A stretch of DNA of 64,000 bases. Origin: Convolutriloba macropyga (lineage: Eukaryota). The position numbers and the translations under genes are program-made. The DNA is taken from the NCBI RefSeq assembly GCF_964194025.1, contig NC_134469.1, positions 58,838,001 to 58,902,000 on the forward strand, written 5' to 3'. Below, in pieces: positions 1,179 to 61,656 of this stretch (positions are counted from its first letter, which is position 1; every line of letters starts with the position of its first letter). The notes beneath the pieces are model-generated. The model was not told where the DNA came from. It saw only the letters and a program-made list of their open reading frames with translations, and made no database searches.

Positions 1179-4100
1179 TTAGTGGACACTATTGGTGAAG
1201 TTGGGTGTATTTGACGTAGTTGTGCATTGAGGTCCTCTCAAAGCAGGGAATTCTTGTACGTGGCAAGGCATCGCTTTCACATGCGATGAGTTGATGGACA
1301 GCGCTCCTCCTACTGGTACTGGTGGCTTTGTTGCTGTTTGGCTACTGATGCTGCCCTTTGTACGTTTGCAGTATGAGGATGAAGTCGGGCTGCTTCTGCT
1401 TGGAGTGTTTGAATGGCTCTTTTTGTCTACATTGACTGGACTGCGGCTGGTGCTACCACTGCCAGTGGTTATGGTCTTTGATACCTGGATAAAGTTTATA
1501 CGTCTGCCAATAAAACATAATATCACGAATCTTGTTGCAAGACTTGCTAACGGATAAGAAATATACTCGGAGACAGAGCCCATATTTTTCTTCACTTCGA
1601 AATCACAAGCGAAATGTCAACGAACATGTTGCTCACTTCACACCCGGACGAATTGCTCTCCAACGATAGGTGGGGGGGGGGGGGGGGGCTGACTTATTTG
1701 ATTCTAGCTACCATCAAGAGCGGGGGAATGTCATTAGACCACTACTAAGGTTTAGAAGTAAAAAACAAACAAAATTTTGTCGCTCCTTTGATAACATTTT
1801 GACTGTAAACTTCCACGAATTAAGTTAGCGGTTTCAATTATGAAAGCCATTTAGATCACGCAAAAATTAAGTCACAAGTGGAAAAGTCCCTCGAAACGTT
1901 CTAGAAAACGGTCAAGCAAAAATTTTGCAATGAAGAGACACGCACGACTGCAATAATAGCTTTAAACTTTGCCACAGCGCAACTAAACATAAGTCTACCT
2001 ACCCTAGGCAAAACGACTTATTTTGAATCTGATAACAAAAATTAATATCAAAGAACTACAAACGCCCGATATAACAAACTGACGCTTTTAAAACGCCTGA
2101 GCGCGCAAAATAAAACAATTGACCAACGTGGGATAAATTTCAAACAAGGGGGGGGGGGGGGGGAGGTACGGGCATTCGATTGTAGCCTGCTGGCAGCGGG
2201 GAGGGCGGGTGTTAATTTCCGGGGTTAATTTCCAAGCCAGTGAATTATTGTTTCGCATATAGTACCTGATTAGTTTTGGTTGCTTGGTTACTGGAACTAC
2301 TGATATGGTCCAGGCTCTTGTTCAGAGGACTGCCAGGAATCGAGGACCCTCTGGAAGAGCCAGAAGATCTAGATGAGGAGTCTCCGGCCCCGCGGATGGA
2401 GCTGCGTCGGCTGTTGTTGGCGGCATTGCACTGTAGCAAGTCCTGAATGTGTTGCACAATGAGCGACACAGCCACGTTATTGTCGTTGCCCCTCGGAATT
2501 ATTACATCAGCGTACTTCTTGGTCGGAAGACAGAACTCCTCAAAAGCGGGCTTCACAAACCTGAAATAGATTGAGTTCCGGTCATAATTTTCAGTATTCA
2601 TTAAAACATAAACGACTAAAGTCGGATGACCTGCTCTCGAACGACGGGCGGGACATTTTATTTATAGTGTGCGCAGCTCAGAAATGTTTAATGGCCGAAA
2701 AAATGACCGACCCCACAGCGCTTTGAGCACCGAACCTCCAGGATGTCAGTCTGAGATCTAATCCATTAAGGAGCAATTTCTTTGATTATCATTCGCTCAC
2801 AATAGCTATAACAGCAACCAACTATATATCAGAATGAGAGTAACTTAGAACACTCAAAAATGAAGAACTCGTGTGAATGAAGTTAAAGAAGGTTTTAGAA
2901 CAAAAACGATGAAGCAAATATTTCGCATAAAAAGAAACACGTGTACAAAAATTGCTTCAAACTTCGTTCGAGAGCAATTTTGAAAACAATCAGTCAAGTC
3001 AAAATGTGAAAAAAACTGAAACTAGAAGTGGCTTGAAAAATAAGAAAAAAAGCTTTGACTCTGGTGTTAAAATTGGCATAAGCAACAAAATGAAACCAAA
3101 TAAATTAGCATAAAAAGACATTTCCGATAATATTTCGAACAAAACATAACTATAATGACCTTTTAAAGACCTTCAAGCAATTTCAGCACATTCGGAACCT
3201 CAAAGACCACTAAAACCAGATTAGGTCATCTATTGCAACTTAATGCCATGGAAAAAGGTGTTAAAACAGCTTCCAAAAAAACCGAAAGAATCTGGAATGT
3301 ACTATCAAACCTTTAATTGTTTTGACTTAGCAACAATAACACAACAGAAACCCCAATTGAATAATTGAACGTGAAATAATATTCTCAAAGCCAGAAAAGC
3401 AAAACTGGCCAAAAAAATTCGAAAACAGAAAAATTAAGCAAGAAGTAGTTTAAATTTAGCCTAGTTTCTTCAACTGAAATAAACTTAAATTGACAATAAT
3501 TAAATAAAAGGGACACGCAGACACTAAAAACATGAAAACGAGTACGAAAAAAATCGCTTCAAACGCGTCCAAAACGGAGAAAATGATTTGGAGCAAGCAG
3601 TTTACCCAAAAAAGTAAAAACTAAAAAAAACTGCTTTGAAAATGCCGCACTTGATCAAAAATTTTGCTCGTTTAGCAGAAAATTTTTACCTACTTTTTTG
3701 CGCGCACGTCTCTCTCAAAAACGCGGCATGAAGAAAAATTTCTCTCTCTTCTCTTCTCTTTCTCTTTACTTCGTTCAGCCGTTTGACCTAAACAGTTGGT
3801 TTTCACGTGCGGCATTGACTTTTACATCATGCTGTAAATACACTCCAAAAAATTATCGCTCAAAAAAGACGCTCAACAAATACTGCTTTTCGAGTTGTAA
3901 AAAGGCAGAGCACCAATACAGTTCAAATTCTTTGGATTGTTAAAAAGGAGCACTATAATAGCCGGCTGAGAAGATGAGGGCAGCTATTGAAAACAAAAAA
4001 AACAACCGGTACCAAAACCAATACTCTCCTTCGAGTCGCAAAAAACCTAGAAAAGACCAACAAAAGCTCACTATCGCGGCTATTAAAAAAAAATCCTGCC

Positions 4101-25139: not shown

Positions 25140-25339
25140 NNNNNNNNNNNNNNNNNNNNNNNNNNNNNNNNNNNNNNNNNNNNNNNNNNNNNNNNNNNNN
25201 NNNNNNNNNNNNNNNNNNNNNNNNNNNNNNNNNNNNNNNNNNNNNNNNNNNNNNNNNNNNNNNNNNNNNNNNNNNNNNNNNNNNNNNNNNNNNNNNNNNN
25301 NNNNNNNNNNNNNNNNNNNNNNNNNNNNNNNNNNNNNNN
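25140..25339. other. Assembly gap (200 N)
   Basis: Run of N. Confidence 1.
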
Positions 25340-53777: not shown

Positions 53778-54230
53778 AATTAACGCAGTGTTGTGATCAA
53801 ATCCTAGCCTAATTTTAAACGTTTGTTAGCCACCTTCATTCTGCACAATTCATAAAATTCTAGCTTTACGTCTATTAGCTCAACTCACTGCATGCTTAGA
53901 TGTTCTACTACTGACACACGCTTAACCATGTAACTTCGAACTTCTAATTGTTCATGACAAACATTAAACTTGACAAACCAATTTAGCATTTAATGACCAC
54001 CCACAAAGACATTGCCTAATTTCAACATAAAGGCTAGCAAAGGTAGAAATCGCAAAAGTTGCCATGCATTCTATTACAACTTGAATTCTACGATGACACG
54101 AAAACAACTGACTGCTTCGAGGCCTGAATGTTGTTCTAAAAATGGACAGTGCCTGTTAGGAAAAGTTTCAATTAAACAAAATATAGCTCGCTAAGGTATT
54201 AGTTGTTGTTGGGGATTTTCTTTACAGAAA

Positions 54231-54445
54231 GGATTTCACCCCCACATCACCCCCAGTTTAACTGGTTTAACTGGGTGCCCTCACATCACCCCCAGTTTAA
54301 CTGGGTGTATATTAGTAGCAACCTCCCCCCCCCCCCTGATCCACGTGCCATATTTTTACATAATGAATTACTATGTAATGGCACGTGCTTTGTAACTGGG
54401 GGTGCATAACATAGTGGGGGGGGGGGGCACAAATGGAAAAGATCC
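54231..54445. mobile_element. MITE-like element (GGAT..ATCC ends, internal inverted repeats), related to 9221-9373
   Basis: Right end gggggcacaaatggaaaagatcc; internal cacccccagtt/aactgggggtg and cacgtgccat/atggcacgtg inverted pairs. Confidence 0.55.
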
Positions 54446-55008
54446 AACAACTGAACTTCACTTAAGTAACTCAACATTTGCAGCTAGAAGATAATTTATT
54501 TTTCTGATTATACATAGGCAATACAAATTTCTAATAATTCACGCAGAGTTCAGACCCACAAATGGATTAATATCCTACTTATGGAGGGACTAGTAAGTGG
54601 AAATCGCAAAAGTACATCGAACTACATGATCTCCTGTTCCTTCTGTCATAATGGAAACTACAAAATCAATAGTTCGACGATACCCAACTTTAAATCAACC
54701 GAAACAAGACAAAGCATTAAAATTCAAAGTTCCGAAACACAAACGGAGAAAATGCCACAATAATTTTTGAACCCGGGCAACGAGACTAAACAACATGAGA
54801 AAAACGACCGACAAACCATTGAGCAAAAAACTTCTAACTCAAATGTCTACGACCTCTTTTCACAGACGCTACAATGAACTTGACAGCAGCAGCTGGAGAA
54901 TCTTGAGCAACTGTGGAAACCCCCTGAAAAAACAGTCAAGGGCGATACCCTGAAGCCTCTCCTATTACTACTTCTAGAAGCGTGCCTCCAGTCGAAACCA
55001 TTGCTCGA
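54446..55008 (-). pseudogene. 73-bp degenerate copy of AP5B1 coding sequence (52876-52948), in two pieces (54446-54490, 54981-55008)
   Basis: 64/73 identity once the insert is removed; contains an in-frame TAG. Confidence 0.85.
54491..54973 (+). mobile_element. 5'-truncated CR1-group LINE 3' end with a 7-bp TSD (CTAGAAG)
   Basis: TSD at 54484-54490 and 54974-54980. Decayed translation RVQ..KWI / YIELHDLLFLLS..NGNY / NF*TRATRLNN / YNELDSSSWRILSNCGN; short TACTAC-like tail. Confidence 0.7.
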
Positions 55009-55031
55009 TTCTATGAAAAACAAAAAGATAT

Positions 55032-55130
55032 GGGTATTTCCCATTACAGCCCCCCAATATTGTATATTTACCATTTGTTTGGCTATAAGTTATCTGGCCA
55101 TTAAGGTGGGGGCTATAATGGGAAAGACCC
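55032..55130. mobile_element. ~100-bp MITE with GGG..CCC TIRs
   Basis: gggtatttcccattacagccccc vs gggggctataatgggaaagaccc. Confidence 0.7.
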
Positions 55131-55139
55131 AGAGATCCT

Positions 55140-56573
55140 TCCTGCAGAGCAAAAAATTTGAAAGGGCAATGCTCAACTGTATCTATAACTTTCTAAAGAA
55201 TGAAAATGATTTATATGAAAAGCAATTTGGTTTCCAACCCAAACGCTCTACAACTGATGCCCTGATTAAAATTACAGAGTGCATTCGTTTTGTGCAAAAA
55301 GAAATTTACCTGCTGCATTTCACTTGACATTAAGAAAGCGTTTGACACTATTTATCATTCTAAACTTCAAAAACTTTCTGAACATGGTGTTAGAGGAGTT
55401 GAATTGGAATTGTTTAAATCTTATTTGACAAACAGAACCCATTGCGTTAAATTAGGTGATTGCCTATCTCAAGTAGAGCTCGTCATATTTGGTATTCCAC
55501 AGGTTTCTGCTTTAAGATCACTGTAATTTGTTCTTTATATAAATCATTTAACTCTCTCTTGTGAGCAATTAGATCCGTATATGTTCGCAGATGACACAAA
55601 TCTACTTTATGAATCAATTTATTGAATACTTATGCTTTGAAAGATGAGCTCAATAAGAATGCATCATGGTTTGTGGAATATAAGCTGTGTTTGAATTCTT
55701 CTAAGACACAACTGATAAATTTTTCTAATTTTAATCTTGACGTCACTCCGAGCGGTAAAACTTTACATCATTCTGAATGTGTAAAATACGTAGGTCTTTT
55801 TCTTGATCATGAATTTAAATTTCTTGATCGTGAAAAAGTTGTTAAAAAGATTTCTCTTCAAATTTTCGTTTTTAAGTGATTGGGAAATCTTGTCACAAAT
55901 CAATTTTGCTTGTCTCAACAAAAACTATATGCTGTCTATCATGTCTTACGGTTTGTTACTGTATGAATGCACCTCAAGTATAAATTGATTATACATACTT
56001 CAGAAAAAAATTTTACGGAAAATTTACTTTAGAGGTCGATTAATAAGTGTTTTTTTGAAAAATAGCGTGCTATCTATATACGAACGTTACCTAAAAGAGC
56101 TCATAAAAAACACTTTGATCTATTTTCAAGTTAGCAAAGTAACTGAAATTTATTCTGTCAATAATACCTTTGTTTTACAAGATCGAACACAGCAGGTGAA
56201 CTTAAAGTACCTAAAATTTAAAAAATTGCTCGAAAAAACTCAATTACGTACAGACGTCTGGATCTTTACATCTTTTTGTTTGTTCAAAATGCAATACCGC
56301 CCGTTTAACATATTTTGTCTGAATTTGCACTTAAGCAATTTACAGACCGTACATGAAAACAATACTTAAAAATGAAAATATTTTTGAAGGACTGTTCATG
56401 TAATCTATGTTTATTATTGAGTTATTTGTTAATTAATCACTGTTGGCCCCCAAGGGCACTCCCATGCAGCCTATTGGCTTTGGAGTGTCCACTTTTGTGC
56501 TATATTTTAAGTTTTGTAGGTCTTTTTGTAAAATTTTGATTATGCATCGGAGAAATGGAATTCATTCATTCAT
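55140..56573 (+). mobile_element. Decayed, 5'-truncated L2/CR1-clade (Crack-like) LINE: RT domain plus 3' end
   Basis: SKKFERAM..QFGFQPKRSTTDAL, LDIKKAFDTI.H, HGVRG..LFKSYLTNR, GIPQ.S.L, MFADDT (55581-55598) and KYVGLFLD; frameshifted; (TTCA)n tail at 56561-56573. Confidence 0.9.
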
Positions 56574-57149
56574 ATATGCACCAACAGAAACACAGTATAG
56601 AAGTTCAGATGCTGTGAAAACAGACCGACGTGGGGTTCACGCGAAATTGAATTTTTGCCTTAAAAAATACTTTACTGTCTTCGTCTAAATTGAGTGCACT
56701 AATTGAGTTCACATTAAATGATTCATCGATGTTCATTAGAACTATGGGAACTTTTCCCTTTGTGCCACCCTCCAGTTGAAGATCACGTTCCATTATATAA
56801 TAAACCATTATCGAATAATAAGATATGCGTGCTTGTTGTTGTGGTCGTTGATGATGATGTCGATGAGAACTCTCAGTCTGGTGACTGACGGGTGTCTTTC
56901 CCTTTCCGTGTTCGTTTAGATATCGTCCTCGTGTTCCTGCAACTATTAGAATCACTGACGATTTGCCAACTGCAGCTATTTGTTTCCAAAATGTTTTTTT
57001 GACAAACTTTTACATGATCTTCTATATTCATTTTGATTACGGATTTTCAGCTCCGGGTTTATGGGAGGTGATTCCCCTCCATTCTGCTCCTCCTGAGGTT
57101 GTCCAATTTTCTTTATGGCAATTACAAAATAACTGCCTCATTTAGATAA

Positions 57150-58055
57150 TTCTTTCACCAGAAGTTATGGTTCACAAAAGCCTGTACACCAACGTACCGG
57201 TTGAGGAGGCAAAAAATATTGCGCTTAAAAAAGTCTACTCCAGTGACGAGATTACTGAGTTTCTGAGGTCGGCTATGAAGAGCCCTTTGGGACTAGTTGT
57301 GACGATTGTTCACTTTAAGTGTAAAAAAAAGTTGTACACTCAGCCACAAGGTTTAGCCATAGGTGCTTCACTGGCGACATTTTGGAAAATTTGTGGATAA
57401 AATCTACCAAGATATCCTTGCAGAAACCAAATGAGGGAAAGGAGAACAAAACTTTTGACATGAAGGGAATGTGCATTGATTGAAACCAACGCGTTACTTT
57501 CCAAGGGAAAGGAGTCAACTGCGAATCATGTAAAGACTGGTTTCAAGCAAAATTCCAAAGTATTAGTGACATCGACAACAAAAACATGCAGGAAACGGTA
57601 TGAATCTGTTCCTATTGTTAAGAAAAATGAGCACTGGAGGAAACACAGGAATATAAAGTATTCAAGAGGTATGAGGATGACCTAGTGTGCACTGTTACGG
57701 GGAACTTTTTAGAGTACCTTGAGTATGCAAATACTCTTCACACAAATTTACAATTGAATCTTTAGACACCCAAAGCGGATGGAAACATGGCGTTCCTACA
57801 TCTGAACACAAACGTAAACGACGAAAGACAAATTAGCTTTCATTGCTATCAGATACCTCCTGATGCCCGATAAACTTAAACTTTCGTAGCTGTGCACCGT
57901 AAGAGCGAAATAAAAATTTGATTCAAGGGACTGCTCGTAGGATTTTTAATGCAACCAGTGGTTGGCAATCCTTTGATATAGCCAGTAAAAAATCAGATCT
58001 TGACTGAAAGTCAGTATCCAACTAACTGGTCTTCAACGAGACGTTGGATAAAATA
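57150..58055 (+). mobile_element. Decayed Penelope-like element RT fragment with a PHD-finger insertion
   Basis: KSLYTNVPVEEA, HFKC..LYTQPQGLAIGASLA..ILENLW, KRYEDD (57664-57681), NTLHTNLQL, MAFL, LNFRSCAP..KNLIQG..RIFNATS, QYP; stops and frameshifts. Confidence 0.88.
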
Positions 58056-58059
58056 CTCA

Positions 58060-59325
58060 ACATCACAATCACAATATAATAATAAAAAACAACCAATATA
58101 AAATAATTTTCACAATATATCCTATTTCTCTTTTTAAATTTTATTGCTGCTTAAAAAGAGTTCAACTCCAAAAAGCTAATTCGTAACAGTAAAAAACAGG
58201 TGTGCCCCTTTGAATTGCCCGACTTGTAGAAATAAAACACTGGTTGTTTCTGATGCAACATTAAAATCAGCAGGAATCACAGATCGCTTTATGTGTTTGT
58301 GAAGCAACAGTTAACTTTACGGAAAAAAAGATTAAATAACCATAAGCGCATCAGGGATTTTAGTTAAAATGGGAGAGGAATCAGCTCCTGAAAACAAAAA
58401 AACAGCTTCATTAGCAACTGTTATTATAATTAAATTTTCTGGAATTACTATCGGAGAAGGAGTTAATATAACAAAAAAATTTAATCCACTAAAGGAACAA
58501 ACTATACGAAGAGGTTCAATAGATACAAAAAAAAGTTGATAAAGCAGAGACAACTAAAATTTTGATAACAGCAAGAAGATTGTACTCTGTTGCCTTAACA
58601 GTTATAGGAATACCTTACTCCATGCCACCAGTTTTCGCAACCGAAATTGTATAGTTCGTATTCGAAAACTCTCACGCAATGAAATCAAATTATAGAACAA
58701 TCCCAGATATATGACCACTAAACAGTTTAGTGAGCAGTATATTTTTTGTATGATAAAATTACTAATGCAAATGATAGTGAAAAAAAATTGTAACAAGATG
58801 ATAAAAATAAATGAGGTAAGAAACATAAGAAAATAAAAGATACTGTTTTTTACGCTAAAGTAAATTAATGCTATGTTCCTCAATAAGGATAATTTATACA
58901 TGTATAATAAAAAAGATCACAATCACTATCACAATATAGCCTTAAAAACCACCAAACTATAATCATAATCATAATCATATTTTAATTATATTGCTGTTTA
59001 CAAATGGCTCAACTACAAAAAACTAATTAGTAACAGTAGAAAACAGGCATGCAACTTGTAATGGATCAACTCAAAGTTGGAAGAAACCAATCTACATTAA
59101 ACCGCAACATTAAAATCGTTTCTGATGAAACATTTATAACAGAGGGAATCAAAGACTGCTTTAAGAGTGTCGGTAAAGCAACATAGTTCAATAGGAGCAT
59201 CAGAGATTGCAATTAAACTGGGAGAGGAAGCAGCACCGGAAAATAAATAGGCAGCTTTATCAGCAACTGCTAATATAGTAACTCTTCGGAGTTACTACTG
59301 GAGAAGGAGTTAATATCACACAGAG
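58060..59325. repeat. Diverged direct duplication (~58060-58480 vs ~58915-59320)
   Basis: Shared blocks atcacaatcac.at, gtaacagtaRaaaacagg, gtttctgatg.aacatt, gggagaggaa.cagc.cc.gaaaa and ggagaaggagttaatat at ~850-bp offset. Confidence 0.7.
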
Positions 59326-59400
59326 GGGAAGGTTTTCATTTATATTTCAACGAAAAAAATTATGAAGAATTGAGAACCAAACGTAAGTTCAGTAACACTG

Positions 59401-60398
59401 CCCAGGCCTAGACCTCGACTTATGAAAAGACTTTAAAAGTCTAGTAGGGGGGGCCAATATTGACTATAATTACACGGTCGAGGTTCCTAGTAAAAGTCGA
59501 GCTAATATCTTTTCATGGGTCGAGCTAAAGTCTTTTCATAACGAAGAAAGTCCAGCTAAGGTCTTTTCATGGGTCCAGCATTAGTCTATTAATAACCAGC
59601 AAAGTCGAGTTAAGGTCTTTTCATGGGTCCACCATTAGTCTTTTCATAAGTCTGTTTTTTTTCAATATTCAAATTTTTTATTTGTTTCCTGCTTCTGTAC
59701 ATACAGAAGCAGAACCGGAGCAAGACTAAATAGTTTTGCACCAGAGCAGTCCAACTTAAGAATCAGTTGGAAATCTGCCAAAAGCCTTAAGATTTTTGTC
59801 AATTCTTAAGTTAAAGAGTTTTTTCAGATCGAGTATATTACCACATTACTTGATTCAATGAAACCAGCTAGCTTAAGAATATTGGTCCTAGTCCCATTAG
59901 CCATGAAAAAATTTCGGCGCTATTCAGTTTGTTTTCCTTACCAAAATTATTAGCTATTTTTTTAAAAAAAATAATGCAGGTTTTTGAGGTATGTATGGTT
60001 CTTTTGAATCGTAAAAGGTGCATGATCACATATGCTGACTACGTTATATGCAATATTGCACGCAAAACGTTAATGGCAGAATAACAGACTTATGAAAAGA
60101 CTAATGATGGACCCATGAAAAGACTAATGATGGACCCATGAAAAGACATTAACTCGACTTTGTTTGCAAACATTGTGTCGAGCTTAAGTCCAGCACAAAC
60201 TTTGGGTCAAGCCAAAGTCTTTTGTAAAATTTAGGGTCCAGCTAAAGTCTTTTGCAAAAAATCTGAGTCGAGCTAAAGTCCAGAATGCCTTAAAGTCCAG
60301 CTAAAGTCTTTTCATAGCTCAAATGAGTCCAGTATGGTCTTTTCATAGCACTTTTTTGTCGAGCATTGTCTTTTCATGAGTCGAGGTCTAGACCTGGG
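59401..60398. mobile_element. Non-autonomous CMC/EnSpm-like DNA transposon (31-bp TIR CCCAGGYCTAGACCTCGACTYATGAAAAGAC, TG on both flanks, ~20-bp subterminal repeats)
   Basis: TIRs at both ends; many GTCSAGCTAAAGTCTTTTCAT units in both orientations; the CCCAG terminus fits the CMCWR consensus. Confidence 0.8.
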
Positions 60399-60919
60399 TG
60401 AGCAGATTTCTCTTTTAGGGACATGATAATGATAATAAAGTTGAGGTTGAAATCAAAAAAAGAAATCAGCAGCAGTTCAACGACGTGATTTTGTATTTTC
60501 GTTGATTTAATTACGCTTCGTGTAATTTATCGTTTAACATTGTTTTCTTTGAAACTATGTTTTTTTATTTGAGTAAAATTTGTTAACATTAACTCTTTTC
60601 AATATATAAGTCACTTGTTCAACCATTTTGTTACCATCACTGCTAACAGATGATTATCTTTCTAGATAACACAAATGCCTGACTTTTAACACCATAAACA
60701 GCAGCAGCAAAATCAGAAATGAGTGGATTGGGTTGACGTCCTATATGAGTACTTTGTTATCTGGCATCAAAAATGTAAAACCTATAGTTGCTCTAGAGTG
60801 ATCTATGTTCTATATACAGTTTTATAGACTCAAAAAATATCAAAAACCTTTTTACGACTCGAAGGGGAGTATTGAGATTCTACAAGTTTTTACGACTCGA
60901 AGAGGAGTATTGAGATTCC

Positions 60920-61656
60920 ATAGCCTACCTACCCCCACCCCCCAACACCTACCTACCCCCCACCCCAACACCTACCTACCCCCCATCGCCCCCGCACCCC
61001 CCTTCAACCTACCCCCCAACCTACCCTACCCCCTCGCTTCACCTAGCTGCCCCAACCTACCCCAGCACTGCCCACCTCCCCAACCTATCTACCCACTCTC
61101 CCCACCTAGCTCCCCCTGCACTTATAAAAATGTCGGCATATTTAGAACACTTTAATATGGTTTGTTGGGCAACTTTTGTTTTTTTCTCTTGTCTATTTTG
61201 ATGTTCTGATTTCGGTAAGGTTAGGTTAGAGATTATAATGCACGACCATTCGAGTCGTTTTCGGTATTCTACCGGCTATATTTTTTAGCAGATAGCAAGT
61301 TTGTTCATTACTTGAATTTTGACTTTTTTCTGTTCGAGCATTTACCTCCGTTTTTGACTGTTGCCTTCTGTTTTCGAACATTGGACTTTAACAGTAATTT
61401 TGTTTGTAATGTATAGTAATTAAGAACTGCTGATATTGTTCAAGGTGAAGAGGTCATTTTGAGATTTTTTGTTCCTATATAAGTCACCGCACTAACCCCC
61501 CCCCCCCGCCACCACCTATCTATCCACCCCAACACCCACCTACCCCCCTCCCCACCACCACCACCTACCTACCCCCCCCCCCTCACCTACCCCTACCCCG
61601 CAAACTACCCCTCCCTTCACCTAACTACCCCCACCTATCCCCCCACCTACCCCCAG
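60920..61656. repeat. Two C-rich low-complexity tracts (CCCACCTACC-like; 60920-61120 and 61495-61656)
   Basis: Read directly; G-rich on the minus strand. Confidence 0.85.

Follow-up and report, generated by a model that had tools for sequence, protein, structure and literature searches.

What is the cysteine-rich stretch that separates two catalytic motifs of a decayed reverse transcriptase (RT) in this DNA, and was it ever part of a working protein? The 64-kb stretch analysed here (the window) had been read, from the sequence alone, as holding a Penelope-like element (PLE) whose RT palm carries an in-frame PHD finger. The peptide quoted in that sequence-only reading for 57379–57681 is reproduced exactly by translation in the frame it gave, as is the spacing C-x2-stop-x12-C-x2-C-x4-Q-x2-F-x15-stop-x-C-x2-C at 57472–57618. 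The spacer between RT motifs B and C had also been called abnormally long, and it is: about 90 codons in the window, against 20–39 in the closest relatives that lack an insert. Among the 119 fetched relatives in which both motifs are present, its length is bimodal, being 20–39 aa in 96 and 90–129 aa in 23. The explanation that best accounts for the data as a whole, and that we consider probable, has three parts: a dead PLE fragment in the window, a PHD finger maintained by selection across the family, and a proposed role for this finger in tethering to histone tails.

The fragment itself is non-functional and truncated at both ends (Table 1). Aligned by tblastn to P0128, a 466-aa relative, it covers residues 139–438 at 50% identity (joint E-value 2e-72), with no gaps in the stretch from motif B to motif C; the matching part of a second relative, P0124 (708 aa), was also aligned to the window by tblastn. 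Both are PLE proteins, and across these alignments the PLE-type RT motifs A, B and C and the thumb are present. At the nucleotide level, positions 3415–4315 of L005, the locus of the P0128 gene, are 77% identical to 57176–58059, and the match extends past neither end. We also aligned to the window, at a likeness of at least 80%, the contigs of two public runs from the same organism. At 57176 other copies in these contigs run on upstream and read as RT, and the summed contig depth, ~100 in the flanks, jumps to values in the thousands or tens of thousands exactly within 57168–58051; about 950 contig pieces per run fall on the stretch, with the finger covered as deeply as the RT parts. Truncation at both ends, together with this jump in depth, marks the window copy as the dead remnant of one member of a highly repeated family. 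A self-search found no second copy inside the 64-kb window. The copy lacks both the N-terminal DKG region, owing to its 5'-truncation at 57176, and the GIY-YIG endonuclease.

Table 1. Features of the PLE fragment in the window
Feature	Coordinates	Strand	Basis or remark
Dead PLE fragment, RT motif A to thumb	57176..58059	+	tblastn, nucleotide identity, contig depth
RT motif A (SLYTNVP) to motif B (QGLAIGASLA)	57176..57376	+	open, in the frame of 57146; 69% identity to P0128 139-205
End of motif B helix (ILENLW) and first linker	57379..57471	+	frame differs from that of the preceding part
PHD finger remnant	57472..57618	+	gap-free alignment to the intact P0128 finger; 53 intact relatives
Second linker	57619..57666	+	in-frame stops 57619-57621, 57628-57630
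RT motif C, here RYEDD	57667..57681	+	RYVDD or RYMDD in relatives
Remnants of RT motifs D-E and thumb	57682..58059	+	stops (57763, 57871, others), at least 2 further frameshifts

Two side observations concern the window as assembled. For 57163–57948, the runs hold two forms, one identical to the window and one ~3–5% different (for example, 10 differences in 217 bases at 57163–57379 and 9 in 193 at 57756–57948); their similar depth suggests either two divergent alleles or a very recent duplicate. Additionally, 25140–25339 is a run of 200 Ns, either an assembly gap or masked sequence.

Decay of the copy is evident throughout. The upstream RT segment is open in another frame, which places a frameshift near 57377; with those near 57866 and near 58000 downstream, the whole copy contains at least three. 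Four in-frame stops interrupt 57379–57681 (TGA at 57481, TGA at 57601, TAA at 57619 and TGA at 57628). The finger remnant retains five of the eight zinc-ligand positions and has lost the second, fifth and sixth; at the position of the structural Trp there is a stop. The sequence-only reading had taken the off-consensus positions for lost PHD residues; indeed, the lost positions face intact residues in P0128, each of them opposite a zinc ligand or the structural Trp. The stop-free pieces of the window gave no match in Pfam, as they are too short and too decayed. This, with the loss of three ligand positions, is what might be expected had the Cys-rich stretch been a chance pattern, or an insertion private to one copy; however, that explanation is refuted by the gap-free alignment to intact fingers at the same site and by their presence family-wide, and we regard its probability as negligible.

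The TGA codons at Cys-like positions raise another possibility, namely, that they are read as selenocysteine: selenoprotein PLEs of the Naiad type have been published from clams and spiders (PMC8557442), and one TGA in the window does lie opposite a Cys ligand. However, another TGA is opposite Trp and one is opposite Gly, TAA and TAG stops occur too, there are the frameshifts and both ends are missing. Moreover, intact relatives have ordinary sense codons at these positions, and the third base of the first TGA (57483) differs in most other aligned contigs. Recoding is thus refuted for the window copy by the other types of stop, the frameshifts and the TGA codons opposite Trp and Gly, and we give it next to no chance.

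The window copy can be read only through its relatives, and natural intact proteins were used for the comparisons throughout. A phmmer search with the open RT piece, run against 1.84 billion representatives, matched PLE fragments: of its 119 matches, mostly fragments of gene calls, many run into the same long spacer with all the Cys and His residues present. The top match, P0001 (2865 aa, 32 matching stretches), was rejected: this protein is repetitive and unrelated, and its score adds up weak matches. Further members came from searching with P0061 and, at a later stage, with a profile built from 13 long members, whereas a region-restricted word search with the finger only retrieved just 6 close relatives. 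Matches in the Protein Atlas all scored below 0.9 and serve as leads only.

In 53 fetched proteins, the complete pattern C-x2-C...C-x2-C-x4-H-x2-C...W-x-C-x(1-2)-C is found between motifs B and C. The intact finger is therefore in-frame, at the same site and with all of its ligands in other members of the family, rather than missing or out of frame; from this it follows, as the sequence-only reading had supposed, that the insert was part of the ancestral active PLE protein and not a private insertion. Full-length relatives are 847–891 aa long, and their order is a DKG-containing N-terminus, RT, PHD finger, the remaining RT, thumb and, at the C-terminal end, the GIY-YIG domain. An HMM scan had been proposed as a check: of nine full-length proteins scanned against Pfam, all nine match RVT_1, and six exceed the gathering score of PHD (26.4–32.7 bits; gathering score 24). 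P0307 falls just under the gathering score, and neither P0304, with an H-x3-C variant of the pattern, nor P0306, despite its full pattern, has a PHD match at E-values up to 0.01. The precomputed Pfam order for P0124 is DUF8422, RVT_1, PHD together with PHD_Pygo, HTH_animal and GIY-YIG; thus, automatic annotation has already placed PHD and PHD_Pygo tags on these proteins. The last ligand pair varies by subfamily, being C-x2-C, C-x-C or C-x2-H among those compared (P0061, P0124, P0305 and P0304). Separately, one member from Tara Oceans has H-x3-C in place of the usual H-x2-C.

P0128 (L005 3001–4401) is an unusual member in its own right: its open frame of 466 aa has no N-terminal region and hardly any of the endonuclease, and nonetheless ends in RELTLKY, the usual terminus of the family. 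This combination of missing parts and a normal end fits a derivative formed by internal deletion better than a simple truncation.

Insert-bearing proteins were found in two long-read ENA assemblies and in another ENA assembly, and a 3.7-kb contig from the Tara Oceans marine metagenome contains a complete insert-bearing ORF of 891 aa. Several of the protein clusters have 50–242 members at an identity of at least 90%, which indicates recent amplification. One such cluster, that of P0126 (220 members), includes an entry from the acoel Symsagittifera roscoffensis that NCBI lists as an 'uncharacterized protein'; this record is an N-terminal fragment that ends just past motif B, and it accordingly documents the family in that species rather than the finger. 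The presence of this entry, and the origin of the proteins in automatic gene calls, might lead one to view the RT–PHD proteins as a domesticated, non-mobile host gene family. We find this very improbable, however, given the size of the clusters, the hundreds of contig pieces in the genome, the occurrence of copies that are 5'-truncated or internally deleted, the decay of the window copy and the retention of the GIY-YIG endonuclease.

As to the class of the element, the full-length relatives have the DKG motif, and the endonuclease motif VVYxxxCxGCxxxYVGQT is seen in the family alignment. GIY-YIG was matched in five of the nine full-length proteins at E-values up to 0.01, and above threshold only in P0244 (25.6 bits; Pfam threshold 22.6). 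The published criteria for the Penelope/Poseidon clade are a C-terminal endonuclease (EN) with CCHH, and no CX2-5CxxC finger in the linker (PMC8557442). By these criteria, the predicted proteins match this clade: CCHH is present, and the linker from thumb to GIY-YIG has no CxxC pair in the full-length proteins. They resemble Penelope/Poseidon elements further in having a single ORF with DKG, RT motifs of the PLE type (SLYTNVP, GxAMGxxLA and RYVDD) and an NQYP thumb; in the C-terminal GIY-YIG domain, with two Cys residues between GIY and YIG and downstream His and Cys residues; and in the occurrence of 5'-truncated copies. They differ in the ~70–90 extra residues between motifs B and C, which correspond to the PHD finger and its two linkers. 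A hammerhead ribozyme in the pseudo-LTR is usual for PLEs, including canonical Penelope/Poseidon elements. None was detected in the loci examined: L001–L005 and 54000–61000 of the window, loci that may lack a pseudo-LTR, gave no Rfam match at E-values up to 0.1–0.5.

The identity of the insert is borne out by comparison with solved structures. By sequence, the P0124 insert matches PHD fingers of known structure, with MLL3 PHD6 (8e-5) followed by MLL1 PHD3, PHF2, BPTF and Pygo2, and the P0061 insert matches the finger of Pygopus-1 at 4e-7. The P0124 insert and its linkers (residues 318–408) were modelled with AlphaFold2, at a pLDDT of 82–90 in the core; structure prediction had been suggested as a further check, and the best 50 Foldseek matches of this model in the PDB are without exception PHD fingers, with MLL3 PHD6 and Pygo1 at the head of the list. 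The superposition on Pygo1 has a TM score of 0.81 (by target) and an rmsd of 1.1 Å over 56 columns. When RT and finger are modelled together (P0124 140–560), the mean pLDDT is 88.9, with 74–96 in the region of the finger, and the model matches the RTs of TERT, group II introns and retrons. The AlphaFold DB clusters closest to this model are PLE RTs in which the same span takes ~60–80 fewer residues, so the insert is absent there; no insert-bearing representative was found among these cluster matches. The insert is, as modelled, a PHD fold nearest to the fingers of Pygopus and MLL type.

Selection on the insert had also been named as a check. Pairwise identity among the 13 long members averages 0.405 in the finger, is down to 0.21 and 0.19 in the first and second linkers, and is 0.52–0.60 in the RT parts. 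The genes of P0124 and P0128 are saturated at synonymous sites; dN between them is much the same for the finger (0.17) as for the RT (0.16–0.22), and 0.70–0.96 for the linkers. A slow finger between fast linkers is the pattern seen when purifying selection acts on a folded domain and free linkers connect that domain to its host. Of the parts that make up our overall explanation, the identity of the finger and the purifying selection acting on it are the ones we hold to be practically certain.

Perhaps the simplest history for the insert is a single change. A maximum-likelihood tree was computed from the RT core, with the spacer columns removed, for 59 rows; two distant canonical PLEs formed the outgroup, and the canonical rows had been drawn at random from among the nearest relatives. 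In this tree, the product of a quick search in which branch support was not starred, the 14 insert-bearing rows all lie on one side of a branch with an SH-aLRT of 91, and one change therefore suffices to explain them. Branches within the insert-bearing group are long (0.2–1 change per site), which implies that the gain is old.

The sequence-only reading knew of no PHD finger inside a Penelope RT core, and here it needs correction. Five Chlamys PLE families of Chlamydomonas carry PHD fingers, located either between RT2a and RT3(A) or within the EN (Craig et al. 2021, PMC8557442). The two cases are alike in that a PHD finger is in-frame within a PLE protein and, for some of the Chlamys families, within the RT core. 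However, the Chlamys elements are green-algal and have an N-terminal EN without CCHH, whereas the present family has a C-terminal EN and its finger is between motifs B and C; the different site and the different clade point to independent acquisition. A PHD finger borne by a retrotransposon is likewise found in CR1/L2 non-LTR elements, where a role at chromatin is presumed for it (Kapitonov and Jurka 2003, as cited in PMC8557442). There, in contrast, it belongs to a separate ORF1 protein, outside the catalytic domain of the RT, and both the class of element and the endonuclease differ. A full-text literature search, with most subscription journals and Repbase Reports beyond its reach, brought up no published PHD fingers in PLEs other than those of Chlamys, and nothing on an element from animals whose finger lies between motifs B and C. 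Thus, a PHD finger in the PLE RT core is already known from Chlamys, and its placement between motifs B and C in animal elements is undescribed within the literature searched.

What might the finger do? One of its closest known counterparts is the PHD finger of Pygopus (PDB codes: 2dx8 and 2vpe; Pfam PHD_Pygo), with which it shares the predicted fold, scores of up to 33 bits by sequence, a CxKWFHRxCT core and, in one PLE subfamily, a YPCGxC start. Human Pygo1 depends for H3K4me binding on the divider Trp in KWFH, on the EVND-loop Val, on Ala356 and Ile357, and on the Glu that comes after the third Cys; the walls of its pocket are Tyr341 and Asp352 (PMC2726290). Among the PLE proteins, conservation is at least 90% both for the Trp that divides the pocket (W in WFH or WYH) and for the Val at the pocket's base, and most members have an acidic residue next to the third Cys, on its C-terminal side. 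The pocket-wall Tyr is found in subfamilies of the P0061 type only, being missing in several others, that of the window included, and the Pygo-loop Asp has not been retained. Moreover, the PLE finger differs from that of Pygopus in having no EVND Pygo loop and no known partner of the BCL9 type, and in residing in a polymerase rather than in a transcription co-activator. The conserved pocket residues would fit binding of a histone tail, and they do not fix which mark is bound. Indeed, MLL3 PHD6, the best structural match, binds histone H4, such that the specificity of the finger is unreadable from sequence.

On the strength of the conserved Trp, Val and acidic residue, tethering to the H3 tail appears the most likely role for the finger. 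Since it is tied in by fast-evolving linkers, the finger probably projects from the palm without contacting the catalytic residues, as judged from motif order only. The two linkers, if flexible, would allow it to protrude from the loop that joins the motif B helix to the motif C hairpin, and would leave catalysis undisturbed. From there, it could tether the RT–endonuclease particle to nucleosomes via the H3 tail during target-primed reverse transcription, and such tethering would bias the landing sites of new copies. We regard this mechanism as plausible, without calling it probable. The more specific proposal, that a Pygopus-like finger in an animal PLE RT reads a histone mark and thereby directs target-primed reverse transcription towards chromatin in a particular state, is tentative and rather unlikely.

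The main rival to tethering accepts that the finger is real and selected, and gives it either a non-histone partner (a host protein, the RNA or DNA of the element, or another copy of the protein) or a role in stabilizing the palm. PHD fingers with non-histone partners exist, and PHF2–VRK1 entries are among the fold matches; in addition, the variation across the family of one pocket wall (Tyr), of the lip Asp and of the last ligand pair would be readily accommodated by such a role. Against this, the Trp, the Val and the acidic residue are retained, and these are the positions at which a mutation makes Pygo lose its binding to H3 (PMC2726290). We consider a non-histone or structural role possible and somewhat doubtful, and retain histone-tail tethering as the preferred function.

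The window copy itself is a dead relic without functional consequence and is silent on function; it is the family that gives the finding its interest. How PLEs choose their targets is poorly understood, and the cues that are known act at the level of sequence, such as microsatellites, a preference tied to Zn-finger-like linkers beside the endonuclease. A reader-type domain built into the polymerase would be a different route to targeting and, if the proposal is true, would amount to chromatin-reader-guided integration in a class of retroelements that lacks an integrase. The architecture also indicates that the palm loop between motifs B and C of an RT can hold a whole folded domain, which may be useful for RT engineering. 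Taken with the Chlamys cases, it would mean that PLEs have acquired PHD fingers more than once.
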